IMG/VR virus record: IMGVR_UViG_3300042482_000702 | Coordinates: 62,001-126,000 of that record | Length of the DNA: 64,000 nucleotides | Direction: 5' to 3' (one strand) | Made by a program: the position numbers and the translations under genes | The notes under the pieces: model-generated | Seen by the model: the letters and a program-made list of their open reading frames with translations, nothing else | What the model was told of the DNA's origin: nothing | Database searches by the model: none | Part shown: positions 996 to 32,011 of the stretch, piece by piece | How positions within the stretch are numbered: the stretch's first letter is position 1 | Layout of the letters: every line of letters begins with the position of its first letter

Positions 996-2354
996 TTAAT
1001 TAACTCTCATAACATAATATCTAGTATTGTTAACAACTACATCATCATATGTACCATCGTATCCATTCATCACACCCCAACCATCTTCATCAACTAATCC
1101 TTGAGCTAAAGCATCTTTATCAATATAATCCTCAATACTTAATCCAAAATCACTCATATAAGATGTAATATCATTCTCAACATCTTTTAACATTGAGTCT
1201 ACCTTATTATCAATCATATCTTGGGATGGTTCCATATCAACCTCAATATTATCTAATTCTTCTTGAAGATATTCTATGTGGTCTTGTGTTTGTTCATATT
1301 CTGTTGAATCCGAATCATCCATAATTATTAATCTTTCTTTATATTCTTCAATTTCAGATTCAAGTTGTTCTTTCCTTTCTTCTTGTTCTGAGGTTAACTC
1401 AAAATCATCATCACTAAAATAGACATCCGGTTCGTTAGCTATATCATTTTCATAAAAATCTCTAAAATAATCAAGAACCTCATCTTCATTAATATAACCA
1501 TCAATAAAACCACTTCTAAAACCCTCAACACCCATATCATCAACTAAATTTTTTGAGTATTCTAATGCCGAAGTTTCCATCTCATCTTCTGTACCAACAG
1601 AATATTCTCTACCTTTAAATCCTGGTAGTAAAACCTCAAATTGGGATAAACCATAATAACTGTAATTACCAGGGTACATATCATAAACATCCGCAACATC
1701 TTCTGTTAACCCATCAATTTCTTCTTGAATTTCCTCAATAGTATTTAATATTTCAACATTTTCATCGGGGTCACCTTCTCTATCTTTATCTTCATACTGA
1801 GCTTCAAGGTCTTCTTTCTTTTTTATTAATACCGATAATTTTTCTTTATCATCCTCATCTAAAACTTTTACATCACCCTCTTGGTCTAAATATTCTAATA
1901 ACGCTTGAGCCTTCATACCTAACTCGTCTTCTTTTTCAAGATTCCAATCATCACCATTTCTATATTCATTCATGGTTTCTTTCATCTTATTTAACTCCTC
2001 CAATTCTCGTCTTTTTTCTCGAGGTGAACCGTAATCACTAATATAACCTTTAACTTTCGTATTTGATACATCAGACACACTAGTACGACTAATATCTAAA
2101 TTTCCGTCAATATATCCAATATTACCCAATGAAGTTGTTGGTGTATTTGCAAGATTTAAATCACCGGTTATCCATATTGGTTTTCCACCAAATTTTTTAA
2201 GATTCGTGACAGAATTACCGTTGTAACTAGTTAAAACCATTAAGTCCGTATATTCTTTAGGCGTCATTTTATAATAATCATCCTCAACTTGTTCAACAAT
2301 TGTTTTAATAAAACGATATAACCCTTCTTCCGTAAGTCTAATTTTTCTACTCAT
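996..2354 (-). CDS. Acidic protein with head-targeting-like leader and short LRR-like repeats
   Basis: N-term RKIRLTEEGLYRFIKTIVEQ; GDLNLANTPTTSL / GNLDISRTSVSDV repeats; very D/E-rich. Confidence 0.65.
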   Translation of the reverse strand: MSRKIRLTEEGLYRFIKTIVEQVEDDYYKMTPKEYTDLMVLTSYNGNSVTNLKKFGGKPIWITGDLNLANTPTTSLGNIGYIDGNLDISRTSVSDVSNTKVKGYISDYGSPREKRRELEELNKMKETMNEYRNGDDWNLEKEDELGMKAQALLEYLDQEGDVKVLDEDDKEKLSVLIKKKEDLEAQYEDKDREGDPDENVEILNTIEEIQEEIDGLTEDVADVYDMYPGNYSYYGLSQFEVLLPGFKGREYSVGTEDEMETSALEYSKNLVDDMGVEGFRSGFIDGYINEDEVLDYFRDFYENDIANEPDVYFSDDDFELTSEQEERKEQLESEIEEYKERLIIMDDSDSTEYEQTQDHIEYLQEELDNIEVDMEPSQDMIDNKVDSMLKDVENDITSYMSDFGLSIEDYIDKDALAQGLVDEDGWGVMNGYDGTYDDVVVNNTRYYVMRVN

Positions 2355-8076: not shown

Positions 8077-11000
8077 TTACAGTACCTCGACCCAACTATT
8101 ATCCGGACAGAAATATATTATGTCGTTTGTTGCATCAGTACAATAACCAATGATTCGAACATTATTACCCGATACAGGTGGAGATATTGAACTGAACTCT
8201 CCAGCAGTTGTTGATACATATAGTATAGAACCTAAAGTCGCTGAGGTAAATGATGTTGTACTAAATTTAGCATAACCTCTTAATAACATTCCACCAGCAA
8301 TTGTTGTCCCTAACGCCATACCTAATAATCCTAATGATGTAACAACTGTTGTTGCATCTGCCAATGTCCAAGTCCCACCAGTACTATAATAATAAACTGA
8401 CCCGGCAGTTAATGATGTACCTACACCAAAATAAACAACTTCTCCCGCACCTCCGTTATTAACAGGTACTGTAAATATTTTATTTTTTTCAATGTTAAGA
8501 TTATTAACAAATGTTGTGTTACTTCTGTTTGCAGTAATATTACTACCTATAATGTTAGAATTATTAAAGGAAGATGGAATTCTATTATATGTACCACCAA
8601 GGATTGATGATAAAGACGCACAAGCCCAATTTCCATTACCAGCACCAACGAATGAACAATAACCAACAGCACAGTTTTGGTCACCACCACCAATAAATGA
8701 ACCTTTTTTACCACAGTTAATTGAACCACCCGCAATTGTTGTACAAGAATCACTTACACTATTACGAAATCCACCACCAATGAATGACCGTACCCCATAA
8801 GCACAATTTGACCAACCACCACCTATTGTTGAATTGACCCCTGACGCTATATTATTTATATTAGGATACGTACTAGAGTAATATTCATTATACCCACCTC
8901 CAATAAAACTTCCTGCTCCTCTGGCAATATTATGTTGGCCTCCTCCAATTGTTGAAGAGTATCCGAAAGATTTATTCAAACGTCCACCACTAACTGTTGA
9001 GGTAAATCCCGTCGCAATATTACCTACACTTCCCATCATAGGGAAATAACCTGGGGAACTTGTATTTCCAGTAACTTTAAATCCACCACCACCACCAATT
9101 GTAGAATAATTTCCAGAAGCAATATTCCCACTACCCCCACCTATTGTAGAATGACAACCACAAGTAACATTACAAATACCACCACCAATAACAGACCCAC
9201 AGGCGTTAGCTGTGTTCCCAATACCACCACCAATAAATGAAGAATTTCCACCACCTAAACTTTTTGTTAAATTCCTAACTAATGGTTCATTTCCAATTCC
9301 AAATACTTGAACCGAGCCTGTTGCTCCGGTAACGTTTATATCGGTATATCCAATGTAAGACCCAGAGGTATAAGTCGAAGCTGTTACAACAACATTTCTC
9401 GAACAAGCGTTATTATCAAAAGTTAATAATAAGTCATTAGTTGTAAAACAACTAGTTAAATTCCCAATAAACCTTAATGAACAATTTCCAATAACAATAG
9501 AAGATTGTATTTTTGGTGAATTACCCACCATATTTAAAACACCTCCAGCAATACCACCTTGGTATCCACAAACAACATTCACATGTCCACCACCTACAAA
9601 GGTCATATTAGTAGCCGATTTATTATTATTACCTGAAACTATCCCTGAACCATAACCACACGCATAATTACCACAACCACCTAAAATAGCCGCTCTAGTA
9701 CGAAAAGTTTTATTAGAAAGACCACCAGCAATAACCGCATCTTCACCACATTGACTAGTCGTTCCTGTTATAATATTACATCTACCACCACCAATAGTTG
9801 ACATAGTAGTTGAAATAAGATTAACTCTACCCCCAACAATTGATGAGAATGTCCCCCCACTAAGTACACGGTTATAAAATCCACCACCAATTGTTGAATC
9901 TCCTCCAAACGCTCTATTACAACTACCACCACCAATGAATGATAATGTTCCACAAGTACAATTTAACCAACCACCACCTATGGTTGAGCTATTACCGCAA
10001 GCTCTATTTAGACGACCTCCACCAATTGTTGAACAAGTACTAACAATACAGTTTGAACATCCCCCACCAATAGATGAATAACAGGAAGAAATTTTATTAT
10101 AACAACCACCACCAATAGATGAATACCTATTACCGACACAGTTAGATTTTCCACCACTAATAGTTGAACCAATAACATTCATCACTGTATTACAACAACC
10201 ACCACCAATAGTCGATGTATCACCAAACGCTTTGTTTAAAACACCACCACCAACTGTTGAATTGCTCTGGGTAGTACAATTTGAATTACCACCACCAATA
10301 AATGACCCTTCACCATTTGCTTTATTATTATTACCACCACCAATGAATGAACAATTTCCCTTTGCATAGTTTTTAAATCCACCCGCAATTGTTATATTCT
10401 TACCACCATCAGTAATTGTTGACCTATTTATAAAATATAATTCACCAAATGTTGTCCCAACATTATTTTGAAGGTTTACCAGAGTAACATCATAATAACT
10501 TGGATATCCAGTATTTGATAGAACAATAGAGTCAACATCGGATTGAATCGTTTTTCCGTAATTTGGGTTATACGATAAAATATTATTTCCAATGGTAAAA
10601 TATGGTGATACGTCACCATAAAAATATAAAGTAGCATAATTAGTTTTATAAGGATTACCTATAAAAATTGTTTGTTGACCCACAACATTTAATACACCAC
10701 CCCCTATAGTCGATGAACAACCTTGTATTGTATTTCCTTGACCACCTAATATTGTAGAATTTTTACATTTTATTTGATTAAGATATCCTCCCAAAATATT
10801 TGATGTTGTTCCTGAAGCAATATTACCTTGACCACCAACAACAACAGATGCATACCCAAATGCTATATTAGTCTTATATCCACTATAGGTACGTCCTCCA
10901 CCACCAACGAATGATAATGTTCCTGAAGCAATATTACAATTACCACCACCAACTGTTGATAGAGAACCTGATGCTTGGTTACGATAACCACCACCAATTG

Positions 11001-14000
11001 TTGACCGATAATTAGAAGCTGTATTACACTGACCACCACCGACTGTTGAATAACGTAGTGTCGCACAGTTTTTATCGCCTCCACCGATTGTTGTATAACT
11101 ATTAGATGCGATATTACCTCGACCACCACCGATTGTTGCAAAATCTCCAGAAGCAGTATTACCATAACCATACCACCCTCCATTATTAAAACACTTACCA
11201 CCACCACCAATTGTTGAACTAACACCGGAAGCTTTGTTATGACCACCACCACCAATTGTTGAGGTACTACCGGAAGCAATGTTATAACCACCTCCACCTA
11301 TTGTTGACCGATAAGTAGAAGCAGTATTATTTTCACCACCACCAATTGTTGTCCAATAGGCTGAAGCTTTATTACAAACACCCCCACCAACAGTAGAGTT
11401 TAAACCTCCGGATTTATTACAAGTTCCACCACCAATTGTTGAACCATAACCATAACTATTATTACACTTACCACCACCTATTGTTGCTCGAGGATTTGAA
11501 GCTGAATTATTTTCACCACCTCCAATTGTTGTATAGTAACCTGTTGCGCAGTTCCTAAAACCACCACCAATGGTTGACAATACACCAGAATTAAAACAAA
11601 TCGTAGTTCCAGTTAATAGACCTGTTGAATAAGTAAATGTTCCTCCGGAAGTATTATGCCCAATACCTCCACCAATTGTCACACCTAAAGATTTATTTTC
11701 ATTAGGTAATGATTGAATTACATTTCTATGTCCTCCACCAATAAATGACATTCTTGCGTTTGTTGTATTACGATAACCACCAACAACTGTTGAATAAGTC
11801 CCACTACTAATATTACATTTCCCTCCTAAAGACGCTGAATAATTCCCTATTGAAGTATTCAAAACACCACATCTAACAGACGAACAAGTACCACCACCTA
11901 ATACAATGACTGGAGGTTCAGGACTTGTTCCGCTAGTCCCCGCAGAACCAGTTGCTCCACTAGTCCCTGACGAACCATTTACTCCACTAGTTCCTGACGA
12001 ACCATTTACTCCACTAGTTCCTGATGTTCCTCTAGTTCCTGACGAACCTGACGAACCTGTCGCTCCACTAGTTCCTGACGAACCTGTCGCTCCACTAGTT
12101 CCTGACGAACCATTTACTCCACTAGTTCCTGACGAACCTGTTGCCCCACTAGTTCCTGACGAACCATTTACTCCACTAGTTCCTGACGAACCATTTACTC
12201 CACTAGTTCCTGACGAACCTGTCGCTCCACTAGTTCCTGATGTTCCTGTTGCCCCACTAGTTCCTGATGTTCCTCTAGTTCCTGACGAACCTGACGAACC
12301 ATTTGCTCCACTAGTCCCTGACGAACCATTTACTCCACTAGTTCCTGACGAACCTGTTGCTCCACTAGTTCCTGATGTTCCTCTAGTTCCTGACGAACCT
12401 GACGAACCTGTCGCTCCACTAGTTCCTGACGAACCTGTCGCTCCACTAGTTCCTGACGAACCATTTACTCCACTAGTTCCTGACGAACCTGTTGCCCCAC
12501 TAGTTCCTGACGAACCTGTTGCCCCACTAGTTCCTGACGAACCATTTACTCCACTAGTTCCTGACGAACCTGTCGCTCCACTAGTTCCTGACGAACCATT
12601 CGCTCCCGATGTTCCTGATGTTCCTCTATTTCCTGACGAACCTGACGAACCTGTTGCACCACTAGTTCCTGACGAACCTGTTGCACCACTAGTTCCTGAC
12701 GAACCATTTGCTCCCGATGTTCCTGACGAACCATTTGCTCCCGATGTTCCTGACGCTCCACTAGTTCCCGATGAACCTGTTGCTCCCGATGTTCCTGACG
12801 CTCCACTAGTTCCCGATGAACCTGTTGCTCCCGATGTTCCTGACGAACCATTTGCTCCCGATGTTCCTGACGCTCCACTAGTTCCCGATGAACCTGTTGC
12901 TCCCGATGTTCCTGATGAACCTGTTGCTCCCGATGTTCCTGACTCTCCACTAGTTCCCGATGTTCCTGACTCTCCACTAGTTCCCGATGAACCTGTTGCA
13001 CCACTAGTTCCTGATGAACCTGTTGTTCCACTAGTTCCTGACGCTCCACTAGTTCCTGACGAACCTGTTGTTCCACTAGTTCCTGACGCTCCACTAGTTC
13101 CTGACGAACCATTTGCTCCCGATGTTCCCGATGAACCTGTTGCTCCCGATGTTCCTGACGAACCATTTGCTCCCGATGTTCCTGACGCTCCACTAGTTCC
13201 CGATGAACCTGTTGCTCCACTAGTTCCTGACGAACCTGTTGCTCCCGATGTTCCTGACGCTCCACTAGTTCCTGATGAACCTGTTGCACCACTAGTTCCT
13301 GATGTTCCGGATGAACCACTAACACCTGAAGTTCCACTAGAACCATTTGCTCCTGATGTTCCTGATGTTCCACTAGTACCTGAAGTCCCTTTGGTTCCGG
13401 AAAAACCACTAGAACCACTAGAACCAGCAGCCCCCGACGCTCCATTAATATTTGTTACCCACGAGTTAAAAGTTCCCGTTCCTGTTACACTAGTCACCGT
13501 AACAGTTAAAGCACCTGTATTTATATTGTAAGATTGGACAGTACCAATTAATGATTCAGTCGCAGAATTAGCGATAATTAAACTTTGACCTACTGTATAA
13601 GATAACCCTGAATATGTTGTAATCGATAGAGTACTACCACTCGATAAAGTTGATAAGTTTATACTATCCGTCGATTGACCTATAATAGCTAAACTAGTTC
13701 CTGAAGAACCGTCTTTACCTGATGTTCCATTAGTGCTCACAGGAGCAATTACCAACAACCCATTTGAACCAACACAAACTGAACATCCTGATGAACTATT
13801 AAAACTACAAATAGATAAGTCATTAACAAAAGTAGTACAACTTCTATTTGCCGTTACGTTACTACCAATGATGTTAGAATTAGTAAAACCGGAAGATATT
13901 ATATTACATTGACCACCAAGTATTGCCGAGTAATCTGAACAAACAGTGTTTAATTTACCACCACCAATAAATGAACAACCACTAAATACCTGATTACCCA

Positions 14001-15468
14001 TTCCACCAACAACAACTGAAGCGTCCCCCAAGACCCTGTTATATACATTATTGCCATCGGCAGTAGTATAAGTACCTCCACCAATAAAAGAACTACAACC
14101 CGTAATACAGTTTTTATTTCCTCCACCAATAGTTGAAAAATTTCCACAAACCTTGTTACGCATACCACCACTAATAGTTGAACCACATTCACTCACCAAA
14201 TTATTATAACCACCAAGTATTGACGAGAAACGTTCACAAACAGTATTTAATTTACCACCACCGATAAAAGAACAACCACTAAATACCTGATTACCCATTC
14301 CACCAACAACAACTGAAACGTTCCCATAAACACCGTTACATACAAAAGTATAACTATCTCCAATATATGCTCCAGTACCTCCACCAATAAAAGAACAATT
14401 ACCCGTAATATAGTTTTTACTTCCCCCACCAATAATTGAACAACATCCACAAACCTTGTTACACCTACCACCAAGTATTGCCGAGTAATCTGAACAAACA
14501 GTATTTAATCTACCACCACCAATAAATGAACAACCACTAAATACCTGATTACCCATTCCACCAACAACAACTGAAGCGTCCCCATAAACACTGTTACATA
14601 CAAAAATACTACTAATGTTATTATATGTACAAGTACCTCCACCAACAAACGAGAAATCACTTGCAATACAGTTTCTATTTCCTCCACCAATAGTTGAACA
14701 TCTTCCATAAACCTTGTTACCTTTACCACCACTAATTGTAGAAGCAGAACAACAAGCAATATTACAACATCCACCACCAATTGTTGAATTATTCCCATAA
14801 GTTTTATTTCCTTGACCACAACTATCACCACCGCCACCACCAATGAATGAATATTCACCGTAAGTACAGTTGTGATATCCACCACCAACAAATGAATGGT
14901 TCCCACACGCGAGGTTTTCTTCTCCACCACCAACGAATGAACAACCACCGATAGCTCTATTACAATTACCACCACCAATAGTTGAATAATCTCCACCAGC
15001 GGTATTTAATCTTCCACCACCAATAAATGATGTTGTACCTGACGCTACATTATCTTGACCACCAACGACCACTGAAAAATTACATGACGCTGTATTTCCA
15101 CTACCACCTAAAGACGCTGAATAAGTTCCGGACGCATCATTTGAAACATCACGTCTAACCGATGAATTAACACCAGCACCCAAAACAATAACTGCCGATG
15201 AACCGGAATCACCACCTATTTTTAAAACCAAATCTGAATCAGTAATACCAGTATAATACCAATATTCCGAAACACCATCCAAAACTGTTACATATCTACC
15301 CCCTTCATATGTTGTTGCTCCGGTTAGAATACCAACCGTTAACCCAATATATCTGAATGAGGAAACAACATTAATATTAGCTTGAGTAGTGCTAGTCCAT
15401 GGACCATACCTTGAATCTAATGATTTAGGTGAAAGAGTTGTTAAATTATCGTTAATTATAATTGCCAT
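8077..15468 (-). CDS. Giant tail-fibre-like protein (2463 aa): two STIGGG-repeat beta-helix modules separated by a collagen-like stalk
   Basis: N-term DSRYGPW...GLTVGI...EYWY head; dozens of S(T/F)IGGG.xN repeats; (G-X-Y)n; C-term cement-like domain ending IYFCPDNSWVEVL. Confidence 0.85.
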   Translation of the reverse strand: MAIIINDNLTTLSPKSLDSRYGPWTSTTQANINVVSSFRYIGLTVGILTGATTYEGGRYVTVLDGVSEYWYYTGITDSDLVLKIGGDSGSSAVIVLGAGVNSSVRRDVSNDASGTYSASLGGSGNTASCNFSVVVGGQDNVASGTTSFIGGGRLNTAGGDYSTIGGGNCNRAIGGCSFVGGGEENLACGNHSFVGGGYHNCTYGEYSFIGGGGGDSCGQGNKTYGNNSTIGGGCCNIACCSASTISGGKGNKVYGRCSTIGGGNRNCIASDFSFVGGGTCTYNNISSIFVCNSVYGDASVVVGGMGNQVFSGCSFIGGGRLNTVCSDYSAILGGRCNKVCGCCSIIGGGSKNYITGNCSFIGGGTGAYIGDSYTFVCNGVYGNVSVVVGGMGNQVFSGCSFIGGGKLNTVCERFSSILGGYNNLVSECGSTISGGMRNKVCGNFSTIGGGNKNCITGCSSFIGGGTYTTADGNNVYNRVLGDASVVVGGMGNQVFSGCSFIGGGKLNTVCSDYSAILGGQCNIISSGFTNSNIIGSNVTANRSCTTFVNDLSICSFNSSSGCSVCVGSNGLLVIAPVSTNGTSGKDGSSGTSLAIIGQSTDSINLSTLSSGSTLSITTYSGLSYTVGQSLIIANSATESLIGTVQSYNINTGALTVTVTSVTGTGTFNSWVTNINGASGAAGSSGSSGFSGTKGTSGTSGTSGTSGANGSSGTSGVSGSSGTSGTSGATGSSGTSGASGTSGATGSSGTSGATGSSGTSGASGTSGANGSSGTSGATGSSGTSGANGSSGTSGASGTSGTTGSSGTSGASGTSGTTGSSGTSGATGSSGTSGESGTSGTSGESGTSGATGSSGTSGATGSSGTSGASGTSGANGSSGTSGATGSSGTSGASGTSGATGSSGTSGASGTSGANGSSGTSGANGSSGTSGATGSSGTSGATGSSGSSGNRGTSGTSGANGSSGTSGATGSSGTSGVNGSSGTSGATGSSGTSGATGSSGTSGVNGSSGTSGATGSSGTSGATGSSGSSGTRGTSGTSGATGSSGTSGVNGSSGTSGANGSSGSSGTRGTSGTSGATGTSGTSGATGSSGTSGVNGSSGTSGVNGSSGTSGATGSSGTSGVNGSSGTSGATGSSGTSGATGSSGSSGTRGTSGTSGVNGSSGTSGVNGSSGTSGATGSAGTSGTSPEPPVIVLGGGTCSSVRCGVLNTSIGNYSASLGGKCNISSGTYSTVVGGYRNTTNARMSFIGGGHRNVIQSLPNENKSLGVTIGGGIGHNTSGGTFTYSTGLLTGTTICFNSGVLSTIGGGFRNCATGYYTTIGGGENNSASNPRATIGGGKCNNSYGYGSTIGGGTCNKSGGLNSTVGGGVCNKASAYWTTIGGGENNTASTYRSTIGGGGYNIASGSTSTIGGGGHNKASGVSSTIGGGGKCFNNGGWYGYGNTASGDFATIGGGRGNIASNSYTTIGGGDKNCATLRYSTVGGGQCNTASNYRSTIGGGYRNQASGSLSTVGGGNCNIASGTLSFVGGGGRTYSGYKTNIAFGYASVVVGGQGNIASGTTSNILGGYLNQIKCKNSTILGGQGNTIQGCSSTIGGGVLNVVGQQTIFIGNPYKTNYATLYFYGDVSPYFTIGNNILSYNPNYGKTIQSDVDSIVLSNTGYPSYYDVTLVNLQNNVGTTFGELYFINRSTITDGGKNITIAGGFKNYAKGNCSFIGGGNNNKANGEGSFIGGGNSNCTTQSNSTVGGGVLNKAFGDTSTIGGGCCNTVMNVIGSTISGGKSNCVGNRYSSIGGGCYNKISSCYSSIGGGCSNCIVSTCSTIGGGRLNRACGNSSTIGGGWLNCTCGTLSFIGGGSCNRAFGGDSTIGGGFYNRVLSGGTFSSIVGGRVNLISTTMSTIGGGRCNIITGTTSQCGEDAVIAGGLSNKTFRTRAAILGGCGNYACGYGSGIVSGNNNKSATNMTFVGGGHVNVVCGYQGGIAGGVLNMVGNSPKIQSSIVIGNCSLRFIGNLTSCFTTNDLLLTFDNNACSRNVVVTASTYTSGSYIGYTDINVTGATGSVQVFGIGNEPLVRNLTKSLGGGNSSFIGGGIGNTANACGSVIGGGICNVTCGCHSTIGGGSGNIASGNYSTIGGGGGFKVTGNTSSPGYFPMMGSVGNIATGFTSTVSGGRLNKSFGYSSTIGGGQHNIARGAGSFIGGGYNEYYSSTYPNINNIASGVNSTIGGGWSNCAYGVRSFIGGGFRNSVSDSCTTIAGGSINCGKKGSFIGGGDQNCAVGYCSFVGAGNGNWACASLSSILGGTYNRIPSSFNNSNIIGSNITANRSNTTFVNNLNIEKNKIFTVPVNNGGAGEVVYFGVGTSLTAGSVYYYSTGGTWTLADATTVVTSLGLLGMALGTTIAGGMLLRGYAKFSTTSFTSATLGSILYVSTTAGEFSSISPPVSGNNVRIIGYCTDATNDIIYFCPDNSWVEVL
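11925..13445 (-). repeat. Collagen-like GSS/GTS/GAT/GAN/GVN coding repeat, 9- and 27-bp units
   Basis: About 1.5 kb of ccactagttcctgacgaacc / gctcccgatgttcc units. Confidence 0.95.
13915..14590 (-). repeat. Three near-identical blocks encoding VVVGGMGNQVFSGCSFIGGG(K/R)LNTVC
   Basis: aaatacctgattacccattccaccaacaacaactgaa near 13984, 14281 and 14539. Confidence 0.9.
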
Positions 15469-17640: not shown

Positions 17641-17668
17641 CAATAAAAAATCCCCAATCAAGGGGATT
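17641..17668 (-). terminator. Intrinsic terminator AATCCCC-loop-GGGGATT
   Basis: Hairpin 17649-17668, T run on the minus strand; same 20-mer at 18615-18634. Confidence 0.75.
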
Positions 17669-17694: not shown

Positions 17695-18129
17695 TTATCT
17701 ATTTCGTTCTCTTTTAAGTCTTCTCTCATTAGCCCTTTCTGAACCTGAACACCCTGGTTTATCATTTCCAAACCCACATAATTGACCATTGTAAATATCC
17801 ACTTCAGGACCTGATTGTCGTTTTTCTTGCCATTTCCAATAATCCTCTTTGGTTTTACCTGGATTAGCCGCTATCCAATTATCTATTCTCGCTTTCTGAG
17901 CCGCCTCAATTGGAGCTAATCTAGCCGCGTTTCTCGCTTTAACTTGTTTTTCTAATTCAGCCCTTTTTTGTTGAGGGGTTAGAACTGTAGTGGTTGTTGG
18001 TGTAGCCGCACTTGTTACGGGTGTAGTACCACTCGTCACAGGTGGTGTGGATTGTTCCGACAATATTCTTTTTTCCAATCTTAAATTAGATTCCTGTATA
18101 TGTCTAATTTTACTATAACTTGTGTTCAT
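17695..18129 (-). CDS. Hypothetical protein, paralogue A (leader ends ILSEQ)
   Basis: Shares PPVTSGTTPVTSAA...NWIAANPGKT.EDYWKWQEKRQSGP with the next ORF. Confidence 0.8.
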   Translation of the reverse strand: MNTSYSKIRHIQESNLRLEKRILSEQSTPPVTSGTTPVTSAATPTTTTVLTPQQKRAELEKQVKARNAARLAPIEAAQKARIDNWIAANPGKTKEDYWKWQEKRQSGPEVDIYNGQLCGFGNDKPGCSGSERANERRLKRERNR

Positions 18130-18162
18130 ACTTTTTGTTTTTTAATATAAAATAATTAGATA

Positions 18163-18588
18163 CTATCTATTAGCTTCTCTCTTAACTCTTCTTTCACTAG
18201 CTCGTTGCGAACCAGAACAACCTGTAGTTTCTCTTCCAAAACCACACGATTTACCATCGTAAATATCCGCATCAGGGCCTGATTGTCGTTTTTCTTGCCA
18301 TTTCCAATAATCCTTTTCAGTTTTACCTGGATTAGCGGCTATCCAATTATCTATCCTTACTTTTCGTTTTGCATTAATTAGAGCCAAATTAGCATCAACC
18401 ACTTGTTTTTGTTTTTCTCGAGCCTCTAAATATTTTTTAACACGTTCCGCATTTTTTTGTTGAGGGGTTAGAACTGTTGTGGTTGTAGTCGTAGCAGCAC
18501 TTGTTACGGGTGTAGTACCACTAGTCACAGGTGGTATGGTTTGTTCAACCAAAAAATTATACTGGGATTCATTAATTATTATTTTCAT
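18163..18588 (-). CDS. Hypothetical protein, paralogue B (leader MKIIINESQYNFLVEQ)
   Basis: Start moved from 18627 to ATG 18588 because the upstream part is the terminator hairpin. Confidence 0.8.
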   Translation of the reverse strand: MKIIINESQYNFLVEQTIPPVTSGTTPVTSAATTTTTTVLTPQQKNAERVKKYLEAREKQKQVVDANLALINAKRKVRIDNWIAANPGKTEKDYWKWQEKRQSGPDADIYDGKSCGFGRETTGCSGSQRASERRVKREANR

Positions 18589-18605
18589 ATTAATAAATAT
18601 CACAT

Positions 18606-18643
18606 AAATAAATAAATCCCCAATCAAGGGGATTTATTTATTT
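18606..18643 (-). terminator. Perfect 16-bp inverted repeat / terminator
   Basis: aaataaataaatcccc-aatcaa-ggggatttatttattt. Confidence 0.75.
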
Positions 18644-18922
18644 TTTAAAATGTTCTTTGATTATTGCAATTCCTTCATCAATTTCATTGTAATCTCTTTC
18701 AGGCGCGAACAATAAAGTATTTGGTTCCACATCCGGAGATTCAACAATCATAAATGCCGGAACAAAATCGTTTTCTGTTATCTCCACAAACATATCATAT
18801 TCGTCTTTGTGCTCATCAATATCTCTCTCAACAAAGAATATGTCGGACTCCACTAGTTTGTCCTTCATTTGGACGCAATAAGGGCATCCGTTCATTGTGA
18901 AAAGAATTAATAACTTATCCAT
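18638..18922 (-). CDS. Glutaredoxin-like protein
   Basis: CPYC active site, VPAF cis-Pro motif. Confidence 0.85.
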   Translation of the reverse strand: MDKLLILFTMNGCPYCVQMKDKLVESDIFFVERDIDEHKDEYDMFVEITENDFVPAFMIVESPDVEPNTLLFAPERDYNEIDEGIAIIKEHFKK

Positions 18923-19238
18923 TTAGTAAATTATCTACTAACTCTTTTATTTGGTGCTCCATTTGCATTCCCGGCTGAGAATAAACTTCTTTACCTTCAG
19001 AAAATGATTTTACAGTGGGGACAGCTCTAACACCTAAAGAAGACGCGAATTCTTGATTAATTTCCACATCCATAGTGTATAATTGAACCTCGGAATTTTC
19101 TTTTCTATATTCTTCCGATAATTTTTCAAAAGCAGGTTTCATTACTTTGCATGGCGAACACCATTTTGCGTGGAAGTCCACGATTAGTTTTTCCCCATTT
19201 TTAATCTTTTGTTTTAATTCTTCTGTTGTAATTTCCAT
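18915..19238 (-). CDS. trxA: Thioredoxin
   Basis: VDFHAKWCSPCK, GVRAVPT. Confidence 0.9.
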   Translation of the reverse strand: MEITTEELKQKIKNGEKLIVDFHAKWCSPCKVMKPAFEKLSEEYRKENSEVQLYTMDVEINQEFASSLGVRAVPTVKSFSEGKEVYSQPGMQMEHQIKELVDNLLNG

Positions 19239-19257
19239 AATTTTAATTTAATTTAAT

Positions 19258-19923
19258 TTATATATTAACCCATCTTCGTCCATTTTTTATATCATAAAAA
19301 AAATGGTCTTTTACGTCAGGATAAAGTTCTTTTAATTGTTTAATTTTATACCCTTCTTTTAATTTATTCTTAACATCAATCACTAAATCAACACTATATT
19401 TAGATGTTTTTTGTAAAGTTTCTGTGGTTTTAATAATCCGGTTTTGTTTATCTTCATCTGACATTAACCCCCAACCTTTTTTAACGGACAATCTTCGTTT
19501 TTCTTTTTGTTCAGCCGCTTTATCACCATACAACTCCTCATATGTTTTACCTTTATGAGAATTACCGTTTTTAAGTGATTCAGATATTCTAACCCTCATT
19601 TCAGGTGAATGGGTATATCCTAAACAACCTTCACCACCTATGGTAGAATTTAATCCATTATCGTAGGAATCATAACTTTCAATATATTTTTTTTCCGTTT
19701 CATAAATAACATTCAAATCACATTCTTCTATTAACTCTATGGTAAAATTTTCTTGACCATATTTTTTCATTGAGTTATATAATTTTGATTTATGTTCCGA
19801 AGTAAAACATCTTGATAAATGTTCCCCAAACCTTTTTTCTAAAGAATTAACCGTACAACCTATATAGATTAAACCATTTTCTTTATTTGTTATTTTATAT
19901 ATTCTCCCTTTTTCTGAGCTCAT
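19258..19923 (-). mobile_element. Free-standing GIY-YIG homing endonuclease with NUMOD3-like motif
   Basis: GRIYKITNKENGLIYIG, R..EH, E...I...DS...GLN; GYTHSPEMRVRISESLK. Confidence 0.9.
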
Positions 19924-20288: not shown

Positions 20289-22001
20289 TTAAAAATCTAA
20301 TTCTACATCCATATTTATGACTTGATTATAATTATAAGAATTCATTTTATAAATTAAATCGTTCTCCCATCCTAAATTATAAACTATTGGTGGTGTAGTA
20401 CCCGAAATATGTAATCCTGTTCCCTCCGTTCTTTTATAATCTGAATGTATTTCTTTCCCTTTAACTTTAGCAATAATACTTAAAGTATCAAATAATTTAT
20501 CATTCACCAAATTTGAAATTCTATCATCCAACACATTCAAAACTTTATCCCAACTATCGTCTAACAGTTTATTATACTTACCTAAAGTTTGAACTCTATC
20601 TAAATTAAATTTTTTACCATTATGAGATATACGATATTCGATTGACGCTCTGTCGCTAGAATCAATATCACCTCTTCTTAATGATATTAATAAAGATTGT
20701 GGTGTTTTTATATATGTTTTAACACAATTAGATTGAGATATTGATTCCATATTATAATCTTTGGTGGTTTGTAATAAAAGAGGTATATAACAATCATCTG
20801 ATTGAAGAATAACATTATTAACTTCTTCTACAAATTTTTCATTATATATTCTTTTAAAATCCCCCGAATGATAGTGAGAATGTTTTTCTGACCAGTCAAA
20901 ATGTTCCTCAATAAATTCAGTATGTGTATTTGATTTCCATTTAACCGGTTCTTCAAATCTTTTTAATGAATCGTAAAATCTAAAATGGTCTCTATAAGTC
21001 GAACTACTAATTTCCCCATCAATAACTAACTTAAAAATTTCAAAAGCATTACTTTTCTCTTTATTATTTAAAAACTCACTACCAATACCAATATAAAACC
21101 CCATTATGGGATTTTCCAACATTTTTTTAATTATGTCGTCATTTTGAGAGGTTATATAATTTTTCCCAAATAATTTACAAGCAAAATCATAAGTCTCAAA
21201 ATTACAAGATTTAACGGTATGTAAAATTCGTTTTAATTTATCACCACTAACATTATGGACATCCATAAAGGCATCAATATATTTAAAATCTCTTTTCACC
21301 AAATCTTTTTTCTTTGGTTGAGGAAATACCCTCATCAACTCATACCAATTATTTGGGAATTTAATACCCGAATTATCCAAATATCTTTTATATATTCTCA
21401 TATCGGGAGACATATCTAAATATTTTTCAGTACCAGGAATGGCATTTACAAATGAGTTAATGATTTCATTTATTTTTTCCGGAACATCCTCAATAATACC
21501 TTTAGCCAAAAAACCATTTAGAATTTCTCTTAAATAAACTCTTATTTTATTTATTGGGTCAACATTAAACATACACCTTCTAACATTTTTTCTACATTTT
21601 GTTTTAAGATGATAATTAGTTAAGGAACCTGTGTATAATGAATTACTTTTAGAATTAAATGTTACGAATTGACATTTAGTAGCCACCTTGAACCACTTAC
21701 CAGCAAGTCGTCGTCTTTTAGCGTATTGGAAAATTTTAAAAGATATTTTATCCTCATCGGTGGTAACACAGATTATTACTCTCTCAAATGATAAGGAACA
21801 CAATGGGTTTGAGTAATTGTTTTTAAACTCATCTTCGGTGTTATGGGTGTCTTTATATACAAAACTACCCCAAGGAGTCATATTAGCATCATAATCATCG
21901 GAAAAAGGACACTCTGTTAACACCTGTTTTATAGGGTTAGAACTATGATATTCAATTGTCTGATGTTGTCTGATTGTGTAATTATATATCTCTTGACGCA
22001 T
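20289..22001 (-). CDS. PcfJ-like domain protein
   Basis: C-term ES..QSNCVKTY...LLISLR...ASIEY...VQ.LGKYN, typical of PcfJ. Confidence 0.7.
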   Translation of the reverse strand: MRQEIYNYTIRQHQTIEYHSSNPIKQVLTECPFSDDYDANMTPWGSFVYKDTHNTEDEFKNNYSNPLCSLSFERVIICVTTDEDKISFKIFQYAKRRRLAGKWFKVATKCQFVTFNSKSNSLYTGSLTNYHLKTKCRKNVRRCMFNVDPINKIRVYLREILNGFLAKGIIEDVPEKINEIINSFVNAIPGTEKYLDMSPDMRIYKRYLDNSGIKFPNNWYELMRVFPQPKKKDLVKRDFKYIDAFMDVHNVSGDKLKRILHTVKSCNFETYDFACKLFGKNYITSQNDDIIKKMLENPIMGFYIGIGSEFLNNKEKSNAFEIFKLVIDGEISSSTYRDHFRFYDSLKRFEEPVKWKSNTHTEFIEEHFDWSEKHSHYHSGDFKRIYNEKFVEEVNNVILQSDDCYIPLLLQTTKDYNMESISQSNCVKTYIKTPQSLLISLRRGDIDSSDRASIEYRISHNGKKFNLDRVQTLGKYNKLLDDSWDKVLNVLDDRISNLVNDKLFDTLSIIAKVKGKEIHSDYKRTEGTGLHISGTTPPIVYNLGWENDLIYKMNSYNYNQVINMDVELDF

Positions 22002-22362: not shown

Positions 22363-23742
22363 TTAGGAAACAGTATAAAATCCTGGTTCTTGTTCGCTAA
22401 GGTTCTCTAAAACTTTTTCAGGTATTTTAACATTTGGGTTACTACCTCTTAAGTTAATGAACGCCAAGTCAGGAAGTTCAGAAACACTCTCTGGAATATT
22501 CTCTATTTGAGAATTACTTGGTAATGATAAAAATTGTAAATTCTTTAAATTTCCAATTGATTCCGGTAAACTTTTACAAATGTTTTGTAATAATAACGCT
22601 TCAAGATTTACAAATCTACCAATAGAATCCGGAACATCTAAAGCAATATCCTCACTGGACTTATTGTTAATTAACAAACGTAATATAGTATCTGGTAAAC
22701 TTTCAAATAATTCGTCAAACCCATAAAGAGCCACAAACTTACCTGATGAACTATCCGGATAATTTACCTCAACAACATCACCACCAGTTTTAACTAAACC
22801 TTCAGCAAATTCTTTTTTGAAGTATTCTTTAAGTTCTTTTCCTTCACCATTTAAGAATTCAACAAGATTTATTTGTCTATCTCTTCTATTCATAAATTGA
22901 CTAGATGGGAAATGGAATTGGTATCTGTTTTTTGGTAATCCGGTTTTATCACTAAATTCTGTATCGTTATTTGGTAATACAACATAATATTGTCCACCTT
23001 GTTTTAAGTAGTAATCAAAATAAGTTCCATCAAGTTTTGACGTACACCAACTTGTTTCACCAAACTGGTCCGTAGTATCATAATACCCTCCAAAAAAAGC
23101 ACCCGCCTCTTTAGCCGGTTGACTCATATCACTAATTGTCACAACAGTCCAACTTGGACTAACAAAATCAATTTTTGAACCAGGATAAGCAAAAGGATTT
23201 TCTTTAGTCAATCTTTCAGCCTTATTTGATTTAGAATCTTTTGTTAATTTAAAATCTTCTACAGCAGTATATAATTGCTCAGGAGTTATTTTATTAATAT
23301 CTCTTAAATCCTCCGGAATTCTTCCTTTAAAACGCTCATGTTTTAATAAATCAACACCAAGTTTATCAATGTCTTCTAAAAACATTCTTCTATATTCTTG
23401 AGCCACTCTCTTATACTCCGGAGTACCAACTTCAATGTCAGCTCTCTCATCAGTAAAAGTTGGTCTTATAAAATGTTTTAACATCCATTGAGTATACTTA
23501 CCAACCTTAACATTATCCATATCTTCTAAAGTAGCACCTTCTTTATCGAAACCTTGAGGAACTCTAGTTGTTGGGTCAGCGAATATTATTGTTTTTAATG
23601 TTTCCAAATCCATAGCACCTTTAGATTGTTTACCTGGTGCCGTTGGTTTTGCCGTTGCAGATGGTTTAACTAATTTATCGTATAGTATCTGGAAACGAGA
23701 TTGTTCTGTAATCAAATTTGATAATACTGAGGTTATTTTCAT
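22363..23742 (-). CDS. Protein with LITEQ leader, central T.WCT domain and C-terminal leucine-rich repeats
   Basis: VPDSIGRFVNLEALLL / LPESIGNLKNLQFLSL / IPESVSELPDLAFINLRG. Confidence 0.8.
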   Translation of the reverse strand: MKITSVLSNLITEQSRFQILYDKLVKPSATAKPTAPGKQSKGAMDLETLKTIIFADPTTRVPQGFDKEGATLEDMDNVKVGKYTQWMLKHFIRPTFTDERADIEVGTPEYKRVAQEYRRMFLEDIDKLGVDLLKHERFKGRIPEDLRDINKITPEQLYTAVEDFKLTKDSKSNKAERLTKENPFAYPGSKIDFVSPSWTVVTISDMSQPAKEAGAFFGGYYDTTDQFGETSWCTSKLDGTYFDYYLKQGGQYYVVLPNNDTEFSDKTGLPKNRYQFHFPSSQFMNRRDRQINLVEFLNGEGKELKEYFKKEFAEGLVKTGGDVVEVNYPDSSSGKFVALYGFDELFESLPDTILRLLINNKSSEDIALDVPDSIGRFVNLEALLLQNICKSLPESIGNLKNLQFLSLPSNSQIENIPESVSELPDLAFINLRGSNPNVKIPEKVLENLSEQEPGFYTVS

Positions 23743-25023: not shown

Positions 25024-25950
25024 TTACCTACGAGAGAACTTAACATTTAATTTTATAAACAAATCCCCAACATTATTAAACCCTTTGGATTTAACTCTAA
25101 GGGGTTTTGTTGTGTCAAAGTCAATCGGTAATTTAACCGATATATTTCCTTTTGGATGGTTAACATCTAACGTGTCTTTCTTTAACGATTCTAAATCAAA
25201 GAAAGCGTTATATATTAAATCATTTCCAAGTTTTTCAAAGTTATTTTCAGGCGAAACTTTAATTCTTAAAACTAAATTCCCATAAATACCATTATGGAAA
25301 TCACCTTTACCTTGTAATCTTAAAAATTGACCATCATCAACACCGTGAGGTAATTTAATAGATAAGTTCTCAGTTGAACTTTTAGTGGTCTCCCCATTAC
25401 AAGACCCACAAACTCTTGAATATGAGAACCCTTTTCCATTACAAGAATAACAAACTTGTCTCACCATCTGAATAAACATTCCAGTCCCAATTCTTTGGAT
25501 TGTGAACCCTTCTCCTCTACAAACATTACAAGTTACTCTGTCACCCCCATTACCATTACAATCACCACATTTATGTTTTCTTTGATAAGTTATTGTTTTA
25601 TCAGAACCATTATAACTTTCTAAAGCCCCCACCACAACTTCAATTACTTTATCCGGAACTGATGGTTGTCTTTGAGAGTGCATATTATTAAACATATCTT
25701 CAAATGGGTTTCCACCACCACCAAAAGGATTAAAACCACCACCACCAAAAGGATTTGACCTTTGATTATCGTATTGTTGACGTTTATCGTTATCACCAAT
25801 CGTATCAAACGCTTCAGAAATTTCTTTAAACTTATTCTCATCCCCACCTTTATCCGGATGATGTTCTACCGCCAATTTTCTATAGGATTTTTTAATCTCT
25901 TCTTGGGTAGCTGTTTCATTAACCCCTAATGTCTCATAAAAATTTTTCAT
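25024..25950 (-). CDS. dnaJ: DnaJ chaperone
   Basis: J domain with HPD, G/F region, four CxxCxGx(G) motifs, C-terminal domain. Confidence 0.95.
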   Translation of the reverse strand: MKNFYETLGVNETATQEEIKKSYRKLAVEHHPDKGGDENKFKEISEAFDTIGDNDKRQQYDNQRSNPFGGGGFNPFGGGGNPFEDMFNNMHSQRQPSVPDKVIEVVVGALESYNGSDKTITYQRKHKCGDCNGNGGDRVTCNVCRGEGFTIQRIGTGMFIQMVRQVCYSCNGKGFSYSRVCGSCNGETTKSSTENLSIKLPHGVDDGQFLRLQGKGDFHNGIYGNLVLRIKVSPENNFEKLGNDLIYNAFFDLESLKKDTLDVNHPKGNISVKLPIDFDTTKPLRVKSKGFNNVGDLFIKLNVKFSRR

Positions 25951-28357: not shown

Positions 28358-29674
28358 TTATTGAGTCTTACCTTTGTAAGTAATCAGTGATTTCATTCTA
28401 TCAAACTCTTCTGATATTTGTTTTGATTGTTTAGGTTCTAACGACTCTAATTTAGCCATCAATTTAGACCCTTCATCTTCACCAGCATTGTCATTAACAG
28501 TTGGTTGTGGAGCCTTATTGTAAGCTTTCTTTTTAATTTGCCCTAATATATTCTTCTTTCTGATGGTATTACGTTTTTTATTAACATCAGATTCTCCAGT
28601 GTTAGCCCATTCCGGATTATTACCTGTTCTTGAAGAACCCTCGATATTGTCTGTAATCCATTCTTCATTTGGATTTATTTCATCATACACTAAATTTTCT
28701 TGACCCGCAGCTGTTAAATTATCTGTGTATTCTTCAACAGCTCCTGATGGGATATAAGCCTTTTTACTCATTTTAGATAACTCACCATTTCCTTTTGGGA
28801 ATATTTTAGGTTCTGTCGAGTACTCACCTTTAGAACCATCCTTTAAATATTCTGTCATTTTTTTAGTAACAGATTTAAGATAATCATCATTTTCTTTACC
28901 TGATTTTTTATGAACTTGAATTTGTTTATCCAAACCTTTAGGTGTTCCCATTGATTTAATATTTTTTTCTTTACTTTGTTCCATAATAACTTTTTCAATT
29001 AACTCAATCATTTGATTTTCTGTTAATTTAACAGACTCTTTCTGTTCACCACTTTTTTTCTTAAATTCTTTAGTTTCTTTTGGAATTGATTTTTCGTCAG
29101 ATTCTCCCATCTCTAATTTTTTGTTTCTTCTTAACATTTTAAAATCTTCAGTATCTAATCTATTGTTTTTATTTTTATCTAAAACTCTTTGATTCCCTTT
29201 TAAAGATTCTCCCATTTCCGATTTTTTACTTTTTCTCAACATTTTAAAATCTTCAGTATCTAACCTATTGTTTTTATTTTTATCTAAAACTTTTTGATTT
29301 CCTTTTAAAGATTCGTTAACCTCTGTTCCACAAAATTTCTCAATTCTATCTTTAGGGGCGTTGTTTTCTTTATGCCATTTACAAGCTTCTTCATCATAAT
29401 CATAATTACCGTCAGATTCACCATCACCTTCTTCTTCTTCAATATAGTCAAAAGATTGGCTTTTTGGAAATTTCTTTGAGACATCGGAAATTCCTTCACC
29501 GCACTCTGAACATTCTCCTTCATACATCATTCCACCACACTCACAAATATTAGATTCTTTCTCATCCATACTAGTTTTTATTTTAGAGACTAAATTATCA
29601 GCTCTTTCTTCTAAAGTTTCATTTAAAATTTTAGACACTAAATTTTCTAAATAAGTCGTATTTAATTTTTTCAT
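28358..29674 (-). CDS. Putative prohead core/internal head protein
   Basis: ILNE, IMEQ motifs; CECGG...CSECG; duplicated LKGNQ.VLDKNKNNRLDTEDFKMLR; highly charged. Confidence 0.6.
   Translation of the reverse strand: MKKLNTTYLENLVSKILNETLEERADNLVSKIKTSMDEKESNICECGGMMYEGECSECGEGISDVSKKFPKSQSFDYIEEEEGDGESDGNYDYDEEACKWHKENNAPKDRIEKFCGTEVNESLKGNQKVLDKNKNNRLDTEDFKMLRKSKKSEMGESLKGNQRVLDKNKNNRLDTEDFKMLRRNKKLEMGESDEKSIPKETKEFKKKSGEQKESVKLTENQMIELIEKVIMEQSKEKNIKSMGTPKGLDKQIQVHKKSGKENDDYLKSVTKKMTEYLKDGSKGEYSTEPKIFPKGNGELSKMSKKAYIPSGAVEEYTDNLTAAGQENLVYDEINPNEEWITDNIEGSSRTGNNPEWANTGESDVNKKRNTIRKKNILGQIKKKAYNKAPQPTVNDNAGEDEGSKLMAKLESLEPKQSKQISEEFDRMKSLITYKGKTQ
29133..29314 (-). repeat. 77-bp direct repeat x2 (105-bp period) encoding a DxNxN EF-hand-like motif
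   Basis: 29133-29209 and 29238-29314 nearly identical. Confidence 0.85.
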
Positions 29675-31411: not shown

Positions 31412-32011
31412 CTATGTTTTAATTGTTTTTTTTCTTGATGCTAAAATTTTAGCCCATTTTGATTTAAATTTTTCATAAAAAGTTTTTAACTTATTAATCA
31501 TTTCTAAAAATTCGTCATCAGCCTTTATCATTTCACCATTAATATAAATACCGCTTTCTTCACCAATTGATAAGAAAAAATCAACATCATAATCAATTAA
31601 TTTACCCGACCATTCAACATTATTTGGATAAATATTTAATTTATTAAAATCCACTAAATCTGATACTTCAGCAATAAACTCATCCATTGTTTCTTGGAAA
31701 GCAACTTTTTCATCTGTTGTTAATTCTAAATCTGTTTGTTCTTTACCGTGTAAAACCAAAATTCCACCAGAAATTCTATATCCTTGTGTTTTATCGTCTT
31801 TACTTTCATTATCATCTTCAATCGTATCTTCAACAGATTTAGTCACGTCGAATTTTTTAGTGATGTCACCTGAAGAAACATCAGACTCTTGTTCTGTGAT
31901 AATATTATATTGTTGTCTAATACTATCAATGTCTTCATTAACTAAACTATTTGATAACATTTTTCTAGACGCGTTAAGTAAATTTCTTATTTCATCATGC
32001 GAGTTGTTCAT
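31412..32011 (-). CDS. Hypothetical acidic protein with LVNE/ITEQ leader
   Basis: 199-aa ORF ending TAG TAA. Confidence 0.7.
   Translation of the reverse strand: MNNSHDEIRNLLNASRKMLSNSLVNEDIDSIRQQYNIITEQESDVSSGDITKKFDVTKSVEDTIEDDNESKDDKTQGYRISGGILVLHGKEQTDLELTTDEKVAFQETMDEFIAEVSDLVDFNKLNIYPNNVEWSGKLIDYDVDFFLSIGEESGIYINGEMIKADDEFLEMINKLKTFYEKFKSKWAKILASRKKTIKT

Follow-up and report, generated by a model that had tools for sequence, protein, structure and literature searches.

The 64,000-nucleotide stretch of DNA analyzed here, called the window below, comprises bases 62001–126000 of IMGVR_UViG_3300042482_000702, a 322,477-bp IMG/VR virus record rated complete, and encodes on its minus strand a pair of small paralogous proteins, here called ParA and ParB, which share a body and differ in the short N-terminal segment that precedes it (class R on ParA, class A on ParB; Table 1). 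These N-terminal leaders are exchanged as modules: the junction is sharp, it lies at an LxEQ motif, and the leaders are confined to N-termini. The reading favored here, to which a probability of roughly 0.55 is assigned, is that the leaders are T4-type capsid-targeting propeptides, which would be cut by the prohead protease of the phage.

As the preliminary description had proposed, ParA and ParB are two adjacent open reading frames (ORFs; genetic code 11 was used throughout) with different N-termini ending in EQ, and their similarity runs from the LxEQ motif onwards. The BLASTP alignment of both proteins (89/130 identities, 68%, E 2e-48) begins at ILSEQ in ParA and at FLVEQ in ParB. At the DNA level, identity upstream of the Glu-Gln codons amounts to 36–44% over 72 nt, which is the background for a genome of 30% G+C, and downstream of these codons it reaches 93% over 45 nt and 91% over 90 nt; the step from 36–44% to 93% therefore marks a break that is sharp to ~9 nt. 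The body had been called near-identical, a wording that suits the first ~30 residues past the boundary and the W-rich core, but not the body as a whole, which is 68% identical. In the family alignment, the conserved core reads ARLAPIEAAQK..NWIAANPGK..YWKWQEKR. The AlphaFold2 (AF2) model of ParA, with a mean predicted local distance difference test score (pLDDT) of 65, shows a free helix of residues 3–25 that ends at E25, followed by disorder up to residue 51 and then by a confident helical hairpin. Candidate cleavage sites lie after E25 of ParA (L23-S24-E25), possibly also after its E13 (I-Q-E), and after E15 (L-V-E) and E7 (I-N-E) of ParB. The leader-free proteins have 119 (ParA) and 126 (ParB) residues and a pI of 9.9. 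Neither Pfam nor PHROGs holds a family that matches ParA or ParB, and the ESM Atlas gave no usable match for ParA, another leader protein matching unnamed viral clusters only.

ParB and ParA form a two-gene unit with an intergenic gap of 33 nt and identical 20-nt hairpins on both flanks, a sequence present in two copies in the window where 0 are expected. The start of ParB is the ATG at 18588, since the longer ORF starting with TTG would pass through the terminator hairpin at 18615–18634. ParA is best read as a tandem duplicate of a ParB-type gene in which the class-A leader was replaced by a class-R leader, because a syntenic relative (L087/L088) holds a single Par copy, with a ParB-type leader, between the glutaredoxin gene and the next gene, and because the ParA body, when aligned, is 74–77% identical to homologues from other samples that have class-A leaders, compared with 66% to ParB. 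Directly 5' of the pair (window 18638–19923, minus strand) lie genes for a glutaredoxin, a thioredoxin and a GIY-YIG homing-endonuclease-like protein; in a relative, the endonuclease is missing and the order thioredoxin-glutaredoxin-Par is kept.

The interchangeability of the leaders, which had been proposed from the pair, is borne out in both directions. A search with ParA returned 55 homologous proteins. On homologues of the Par body from other metagenomes, at least four leader types occur, and N-terminal to the body an alignment of 14 of these homologues shows conservation only of M1, L23, E25 and Q26. The class-R (ParA-type) leader, in turn, is near-invariant on 48 proteins that represent 13 unrelated body clusters, and its column information stays near maximum through ...LSEQ and falls straight after EQ. 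The junction follows the motif (L/I/V/F)xE(Q), also in agreement with the preliminary description. ParA and its copy on a 464-kb contig share 96% of their amino acids, yet they use different codons at 10 of 24 identical residues, and the conserved Ser of class A is encoded by TCN as well as by AGY codons. Since identical residues are encoded by different codons, conservation operates on the peptide and not on the DNA, and the leaders are under strong purifying selection as peptides.

The two leaders of the pair had also been described as unrelated. A profile of class A does not match ParA, in line with that description, but "different leader classes" is the better term, since all classes have a common helix-plus-(L/I)xE design; they may share a remote common ancestry. 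A view of both Par leaders as diverged copies of one leader was rejected: MAFFT can force them into an alignment, but profiles do not connect them. A further swap is seen between the gene at genome 37716–38330 (L006:3716-4330, minus strand) and L092:368-781, which encode homologous bodies of the pattern ..PGKYV.H.S...R..I...G......GECY..; the leader belongs to class A in this genome and is a different one, MKLINTIIRLVNEE, in the 464-kb relative. Two distant Par homologues (P0011 and P0013) hold a leader of the type M.NFDLR.FLIENK..., then a hydrophobic segment resembling a membrane helix, and then the conserved body, an arrangement that recalls the ejection proteins inserted into membranes by other phages.

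Across the genome, ~54 of the ~385 ORFs were found to have leader-like N-termini, counted by eye plus N-terminal clustering. Besides class R and several smaller classes, they include class A (MK(I/L)IITE(S/N)(Q/K)...), class B (M.K..RL.E.DL.....I.EQ) and class C (MNLQENI.RI..MMG..(I/L).E.). The bodies behind these leaders are unrelated at the phmmer level, except for seven small paralogues and the Par pair. The class-A profile gives 24 significant matches, all of them at ORF starts, and a six-frame scan gives 22 matches in this genome, 2–16 per genome in four relatives whose genomes are complete or nearly so, and none in T4, Flavobacterium phage immuto, Mel-JY01 or LR756508. The ORFs with the start MK(I/L)IITE number 22–24. 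Within the first 40 residues of the ORFs of the genome, [ILVMF]xEQ occurs 32 times where 10.3 are expected (p 4e-8); the N-terminal heptad M[KR][ILVF][ILVR][ILV][TNK]E occurs 20 times where 0.008 are expected, and [AGS]xE shows no N-terminal enrichment. A Pfam search with 20 leader-bearing bodies yielded only an Acb1-like match and a sub-threshold rotamase match, and on related contigs class-A leaders precede proteins with YkuD and DUF5872 domains. A full-text literature search with three leader strings found no paper.

Four more proteins of the window, with N-termini at 2354, 23742, 29674 (with an internal IMEQ) and 32011, had been listed as further examples of leaders. Their N-termini read as described, but only the first is a solid member of a class, namely class B. 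In the leucine-rich repeat (LRR) protein starting at 23742, the N-terminal similarity to a paralogue at genome 39984–41579 extends past ITEQ, so the boundary is not at that motif, and the N-termini at 29674 and 32011 fall into no leader class. The last of these proteins resembles the ...YITEQ N-terminus of the genome ORF 139134–139793, a likeness that is not significant in clustering. The EF-hand-like protein starting at 29674 also contains an internal exact-type repeat, ESLKGNQ.VLDKNKNNRLDTEDFKMLR, in two copies.

A second family in which leaders are swapped is related to Acb1, a 2H phosphodiesterase that counters the cyclic oligonucleotide-based antiphage signaling system (CBASS). A leader protein encoded outside the window (genome 29610–30173, minus strand; L005:15610-16173) has a leader of class C and scores above the Pfam threshold for Acb1; T4 Acb1 and PDB 7T26 both align with it at its second H-x-T motif. 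The 120 best homologues of this protein were compared, with YxYGC at the start of the conserved fold as an anchor, which is present in 118 of them. All 118 have an N-terminal extension of 8–30 residues, and these extensions belong to clearly different classes. Nevertheless, [ILVMF]xE is found in 118/118 of these leaders, with Glu 3–5 residues before the anchor in 108 and with Leu or Ile almost always at P3. Six homologues carry MKTIKDFITE, which equals the T4 tag at 6/10 positions, although 10 residues are too short for a meaningful E-value. The Acb1 of T4 itself begins directly at the fold, without a leader.

The machinery that a T4-type propeptide would need is encoded in the head module, outside the window. 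Besides a portal and a large terminase, this module encodes a major capsid protein similar to T4 gp23 (E 1e-25), an acidic scaffold-like protein (genome 240171–241625) and a prohead protease of the Peptidase_S77 family (genome 242014–242739; 84.9 bits), to which the T4 gp21 structure 5JBL was matched at 3.5e-14. A gp21-like protease, named in the preliminary description as a thing to look for, is thus present, and it was also found in all four related complete genomes. In T4, the protease of this family cuts behind the Glu of (L/I)xE. At the N-terminus of the capsid protein lies a T4-like delta domain of 60 residues, almost invariant in 77 relatives, which ends in an invariant FLINE|A; the residues beyond it are variable. 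In HMMER, similarity to mature T4 gp23 sets in a few residues past this point, and gp23 itself reads FLTE|AEIGG at its known maturation site (T4 record NC_000866). The capsid maturation site would accordingly be LINE|A; since the position of FLINE|A matches that of FLTE|AEIGG, this putative site looks like the ends of the leaders, with which it was compared (LINEQ, IINEA, VINED, ILSEQ and FLVEQ).

N-termini of T4 proteins were read from the same record: MKTYQEFIAE|A in IPII and IPIII, ...STITE|A in IPI, MELITELFDE|D in Alt and MAKINELLRE|S in gp24. The likeness to T4 that had been put forward for the leaders is upheld, the T4 sequences having the same length and the same ending. In T4, the targeting sequences are propeptides of 10–20 residues by which Alt and the internal proteins reach the core; they are cut off after Glu once there, and they suffice to package foreign proteins (PMC5694885, PMC9958956). 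Judged by the traits of such capsid-targeting sequences (CTS), the leaders of ParB (15 residues) and ParA (25 residues) are short segments at the extreme N-terminus, they end in (L/I)-x-Glu (L-V-E15 and L-S-E25, with L and E conserved in 14 homologues), and a gp21-family protease is encoded inside a T4-like head module. No significant similarity was found between the ParA and ParB leaders and the T4 tag MKTYQEFIAE.

The leader genes also have an upstream element in common with virion genes. The aTATTTATaAnAAA motif is 15-fold enriched upstream of ORFs, often just 4 nt before the ATG, and is found before genes of the head (portal, protease and scaffold) and of the tail (sheath, tube, gp25-like baseplate and fibre). 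Of the leader genes, 26/54 have it upstream, vs 61/330 other genes (odds ratio 4.1, p 7e-6); in the case of the 452-residue class-B protein, TATTTAT stands 11 nt upstream. TATTTAT may be a late-gene promoter or an initiation signal, and would mark late expression.

According to the favored reading, each leader would be a short N-terminal helix of 7–30 residues, belonging to one of several sequence classes, that docks the new protein on the scaffolding core during prohead assembly. The gp21-family prohead protease would then cut after the Glu of (L/I/V/F)-x-E at the end of the helix, and the mature cargo would remain in the head until it enters the host together with the DNA; all four steps, from docking through cleavage and packaging to injection, are inferred. 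Mature ParA and ParB would be basic proteins of ~120 residues starting with Gln. Because such a tag would be autonomous, recombination could place any tag class on any cargo.

Several observations weigh against capsid-targeting propeptides. The near-invariant Gln after Glu is not covered by the T4 rule, the capsid site having Ala there; speculatively, it could make the N-terminus stable or a pyro-Glu. The long S/T/P linker past the junction is as compatible with a permanent tether as with an exposed cleavage site. The seven ITENK paralogues have an early I-T-E site only and no consistent second (L/I)xE, and the head-module proteins encoded between the portal and protease genes are devoid of these leader classes. 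The tagged cargo, ~50 species or 12–14% of the ORFs, is far above the handful of T4, and a few leader genes have host-type early promoters. The EF-hand-like protein contains, at residues 215–234, an internal class-B-like helix ending in IMEQ (class-B profile E 0.024), which could reflect a fused gene or an internal processing site, and class-C-like segments (..NENIIRIKQLL) stand at the C-termini of two adjacent proteins (genome 265996–266565 and 266565–267191; L098). These C-terminal and internal segments point to a docking helix that is not necessarily a removable N-terminal propeptide. Finally, class A is absent from immuto and Mel-JY01, the phage collection contains no cultured close relative, and no cultured member of the clade is known; megablast with 10 kb and tblastn with ParA gave no match in that collection, and a distant blastn search with the protease region returned only two short Staphylococcus phage matches.

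The main rival, although unlikely, is that the leader is a permanent docking or oligomerization helix that is never removed. The S/T/P linker would then tether the cargo to a common hub, in the virion or in an intracellular phage or host structure, and LxEQ would be a binding face or a helix cap. This explanation accommodates the architecture of a helix, a 25-residue disordered linker and a domain, the stronger conservation of the leader than of the cargo, the class-C-like C-terminal and class-B-like internal segments, and the conservation of Gln after Glu. However, across Acb1-like leaders of widely differing class and length the one constant is (L/I)xE, set at an unvarying distance from the fold, which is a better fit to a processing site, and the predicted capsid maturation site and the T4 targeting sequences end alike.

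Less probable again is a propeptide that is cut by the prohead protease or by another one and serves inactivity, timing or destabilization, as in a pro-enzyme or a degron, without being a head address and without packaging. It would draw on the (L/I)xE ending together with the presence of the protease, on the enzymes among the cargo (Acb1-like here, YkuD in a relative), and on the start with Met-Lys and three hydrophobic residues, which loosely recalls N-terminal protease-recognition tags. Nevertheless, the majority of the bodies are small and non-enzymatic, and the leader genes share their upstream motif with virion genes. Moreover, proteases of the gp21 type are active only within assembled proheads (PMC9958956), and therefore a substrate must already be inside.

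Conservation at the level of the nucleic acid, as a translation-initiation or 5' mRNA element or a recombination cassette whose peptide has no function, is very improbable. The start of class A is A/T-rich and the upstream motif lies only 4 nt before the ATG in many genes, but codons vary where residues are constant (Ser by TCN/AGY; 10/24 identical residues), and the conserved stretch runs for 16–26 codons and stops at a defined residue; the pattern at synonymous sites led to the rejection of this candidate. Least probable of all is a compositional accident of an AT-rich genome with abundant Lys/Ile/Glu/Asn and ~30% G+C, or a single old family whose bodies diverged beyond recognition; these are contradicted by the 20 heptads vs 0.008 expected, by the Par and Acb1-like families, which show the opposite pattern of one conserved body behind different leaders, and by the sharp step in DNA identity.

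Among known systems, the closest to capsid-targeting leaders of the kind favored here are the CTS of T4 (IPI, IPII, IPIII and Alt, cut by gp21). Both are N-terminal tags of 10–20 residues with a Met-Lys/Glu start and a (L/I)-x-Glu end, both stand on small basic cargo and are common to unrelated proteins, with tags more conserved than bodies, and this phage has a gp21-family protease and a T4-like capsid delta domain. On the other hand, there are several tag classes here and essentially one in T4, and ~50 tagged genes per genome compared to ~4–5 in T4. The tags reach 26–30 residues here, with the near-invariant Gln after Glu and often a long S/T/P linker; those of ParA and ParB have no significant sequence match in T4, and a tag role is putative here.

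In the jumbo phages phiKZ, 201phi2-1 and SPN3US, the propeptides of head and ejection proteins are cut at (S/A/G)-x-E and are mostly long, >100 residues (PMC5694885, PMC10052503). Like this phage, they have many head-internal proteins, a T4-related protease cutting after Glu, and paralogues with conserved N-termini and diverged bodies (PMC5694885, PMC10052503). However, the tags described here are short, the head module is closer to that of T4, and the (S/A/G)-x-Glu motif is not found at the junctions, where P3 is Leu, Ile, Val or Phe, with Leu/Ile as the typical residues.

At the internal-protein loci of T-even phages, different genes are said, in work of Repoila et al. from 1994, to keep a conserved tag-coding 5' end. 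Cargo would be exchanged there behind a conserved leader, as in the Par locus, which is single-copy in a relative; unlike those loci, leaders are exchanged here too (one body with at least four classes), and the sets of leader genes are larger and spread over several genome regions. The polymorphic toxins, with VENN before the C-terminal domains of CdiA, offer an analogy only: a short peptide motif marks the swap point there as well, but what is swapped are C-terminal toxin domains of secreted bacterial proteins, unrelated in sequence, location and machinery. Signal peptides of the Sec, Tat or lipoprotein type, with a hydrophobic core of at least ~10 residues and a cleavage site or lipobox, do not describe the leaders, which on direct reading are charged amphipathic helices; the true lipoprotein-like N-termini of the genome (pair 41641/92728) look unlike them. 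Neither do the leaders of ribosomally synthesized and post-translationally modified peptides (RiPPs), which have a short core and modifying enzymes: the bodies here have 90–500 residues, some with enzyme folds, and no modifying-enzyme genes were found among the neighbors scanned.

The genome has a G+C content of ~30% and is rich in Lys, Ile, Glu and Asn codons' products, with the majority of its ORFs on the minus strand, and it encodes a myovirus-like tail sheath, a tail tube, a baseplate and collagen-like fibres. About 18 small genes have upstream promoters of the form TTG...TAnnTTTG, of Bacteroidota type (-33/-7), and SprB, Fib_succ_major and DUF5122 domains are found in large proteins; on account of these promoters and domains, the host is probably a member of the Bacteroidota. 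Such promoters (TTG...TA(T/A)CTTTG) stand, for example, before the window ORFs 20289–22001 and 44953–45852 (genome 82289–84001 and 106953–107852). The ~18 genes are presumably early genes. The best matches of the capsid protein, at 42–47% identity over part of the protein, are in Microcystis phage Mel-JY01, Flavobacterium phage immuto and two huge uncultured phages, and at least 598 IMG/VR contigs encode a capsid protein 74–93% identical to this one.

Elsewhere in the window, a 2463-residue protein with long collagen triple-helix repeats (8077–15468, minus strand) is followed by one of 965 residues with a Fibrobacter-type major domain (5169–8066, minus strand), both of which are likely fibre or adhesin proteins. 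ARAGORN called a tRNA-Leu(taa) at 3998–4086 (minus strand), within the DUF5122 beta-propeller ORF 3611–5041; since Rfam found no tRNA at gathering score across the whole window, this is probably a false call. The phage also encodes a J-domain protein (window 25024–25950, minus strand) and an Hsp70/DnaK-like protein (genome 311009–312883).

Table 1. Positions of the Par pair, its parts and flanking signals, and of the other proteins of the window discussed as leader candidates.
Feature	Position in window	Strand	Description
ParA	17695..18129	-	144 aa; leader, S/T/P linker and small basic helical body; ORF call
ParA leader, residues 1-25	18055..18129	-	Class R, MNxSYSKIRHIQES...LSE; AF2 helix, conservation, codon differences
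ParA linker, residues 26-51	17977..18054	-	Gln26, then Pro/Thr/Ser-rich disordered stretch; pLDDT <50, no secondary structure
ParA body	17698..17976	-	Helical hairpin, residues 52-106 (pLDDT 80-92), and basic C-terminal tail
ParB	18163..18588	-	141-aa paralogue of ParA with class-A leader
ParB leader, residues 1-15	18544..18588	-	Class A, MKIIINESQY..LVE; class-A profile E 9e-9, six-frame scan 7.7e-8
ParB linker, residues 16-42	18463..18543	-	Gln16, then Pro/Thr/Ser-rich; aligns with ParA linker
TATTTAT element	18593..18599	-	4 nt before ParB ATG; further copies 22 and 26 nt upstream
Terminator-like hairpin 5' of ParB	18615..18634	-	Ends glutaredoxin transcript; exact 20-nt copy of the hairpin after ParA
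Terminator-like hairpin and T-run 3' of ParA	17649..17668	-	Closes ParB-ParA unit; hairpin search
452-aa acidic protein	996..2354	-	Class-B leader M..KIRLTEE...IVEQ; N-terminus clusters with three other class-B leaders (E ~1e-13), bodies unrelated
459-aa LRR protein	22363..23742	-	N-terminal LITEQ, weak leader case; Pfam LRR match
438-aa EF-hand-like protein	28358..29674	-	N-terminal ILNE; N-terminus outside all leader clusters
199-aa acidic protein	31412..32011	-	Long N-terminal helix region with LVNE and IITEQ; outside leader classes

The kind of system proposed here is known from T4; what would be new are its multiple tag classes, the swapping of tags in addition to cargo, the scale, and the apparent recruitment of a counter-defense enzyme. 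More tentatively, a whole clade of uncultivated 230–460-kb jumbo phages with Bacteroidota-type promoters could use the leaders as a combinatorial addressing code, in which docking partner, copy number or sub-compartment of the head may depend on the leader class. The code would preload ~40–50 proteins (~1 gene in 8), including counter-defense enzymes such as the Acb1-like anti-CBASS phosphodiesterase, so that the phage would reach its host with a protein arsenal in place, and leader swapping would be the evolutionary route by which genes enter or leave that arsenal. If the leaders are indeed capsid-targeting propeptides, they would show cleanly, in a natural case, how modules are exchanged at a protease site, and their natural diversity would widen the toolbox for loading foreign proteins in phage heads, which now rests on the single T4 tag. 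The leader would also allow injected proteins to be recognized from sequence alone across a large and widespread group of jumbo phages that have not been cultivated. Because injected proteins act ahead of any phage gene expression, they are prime candidates for roles in counter-defense and host takeover; judging from the Acb1-like case, anti-CBASS activity may reach the host ready-made.

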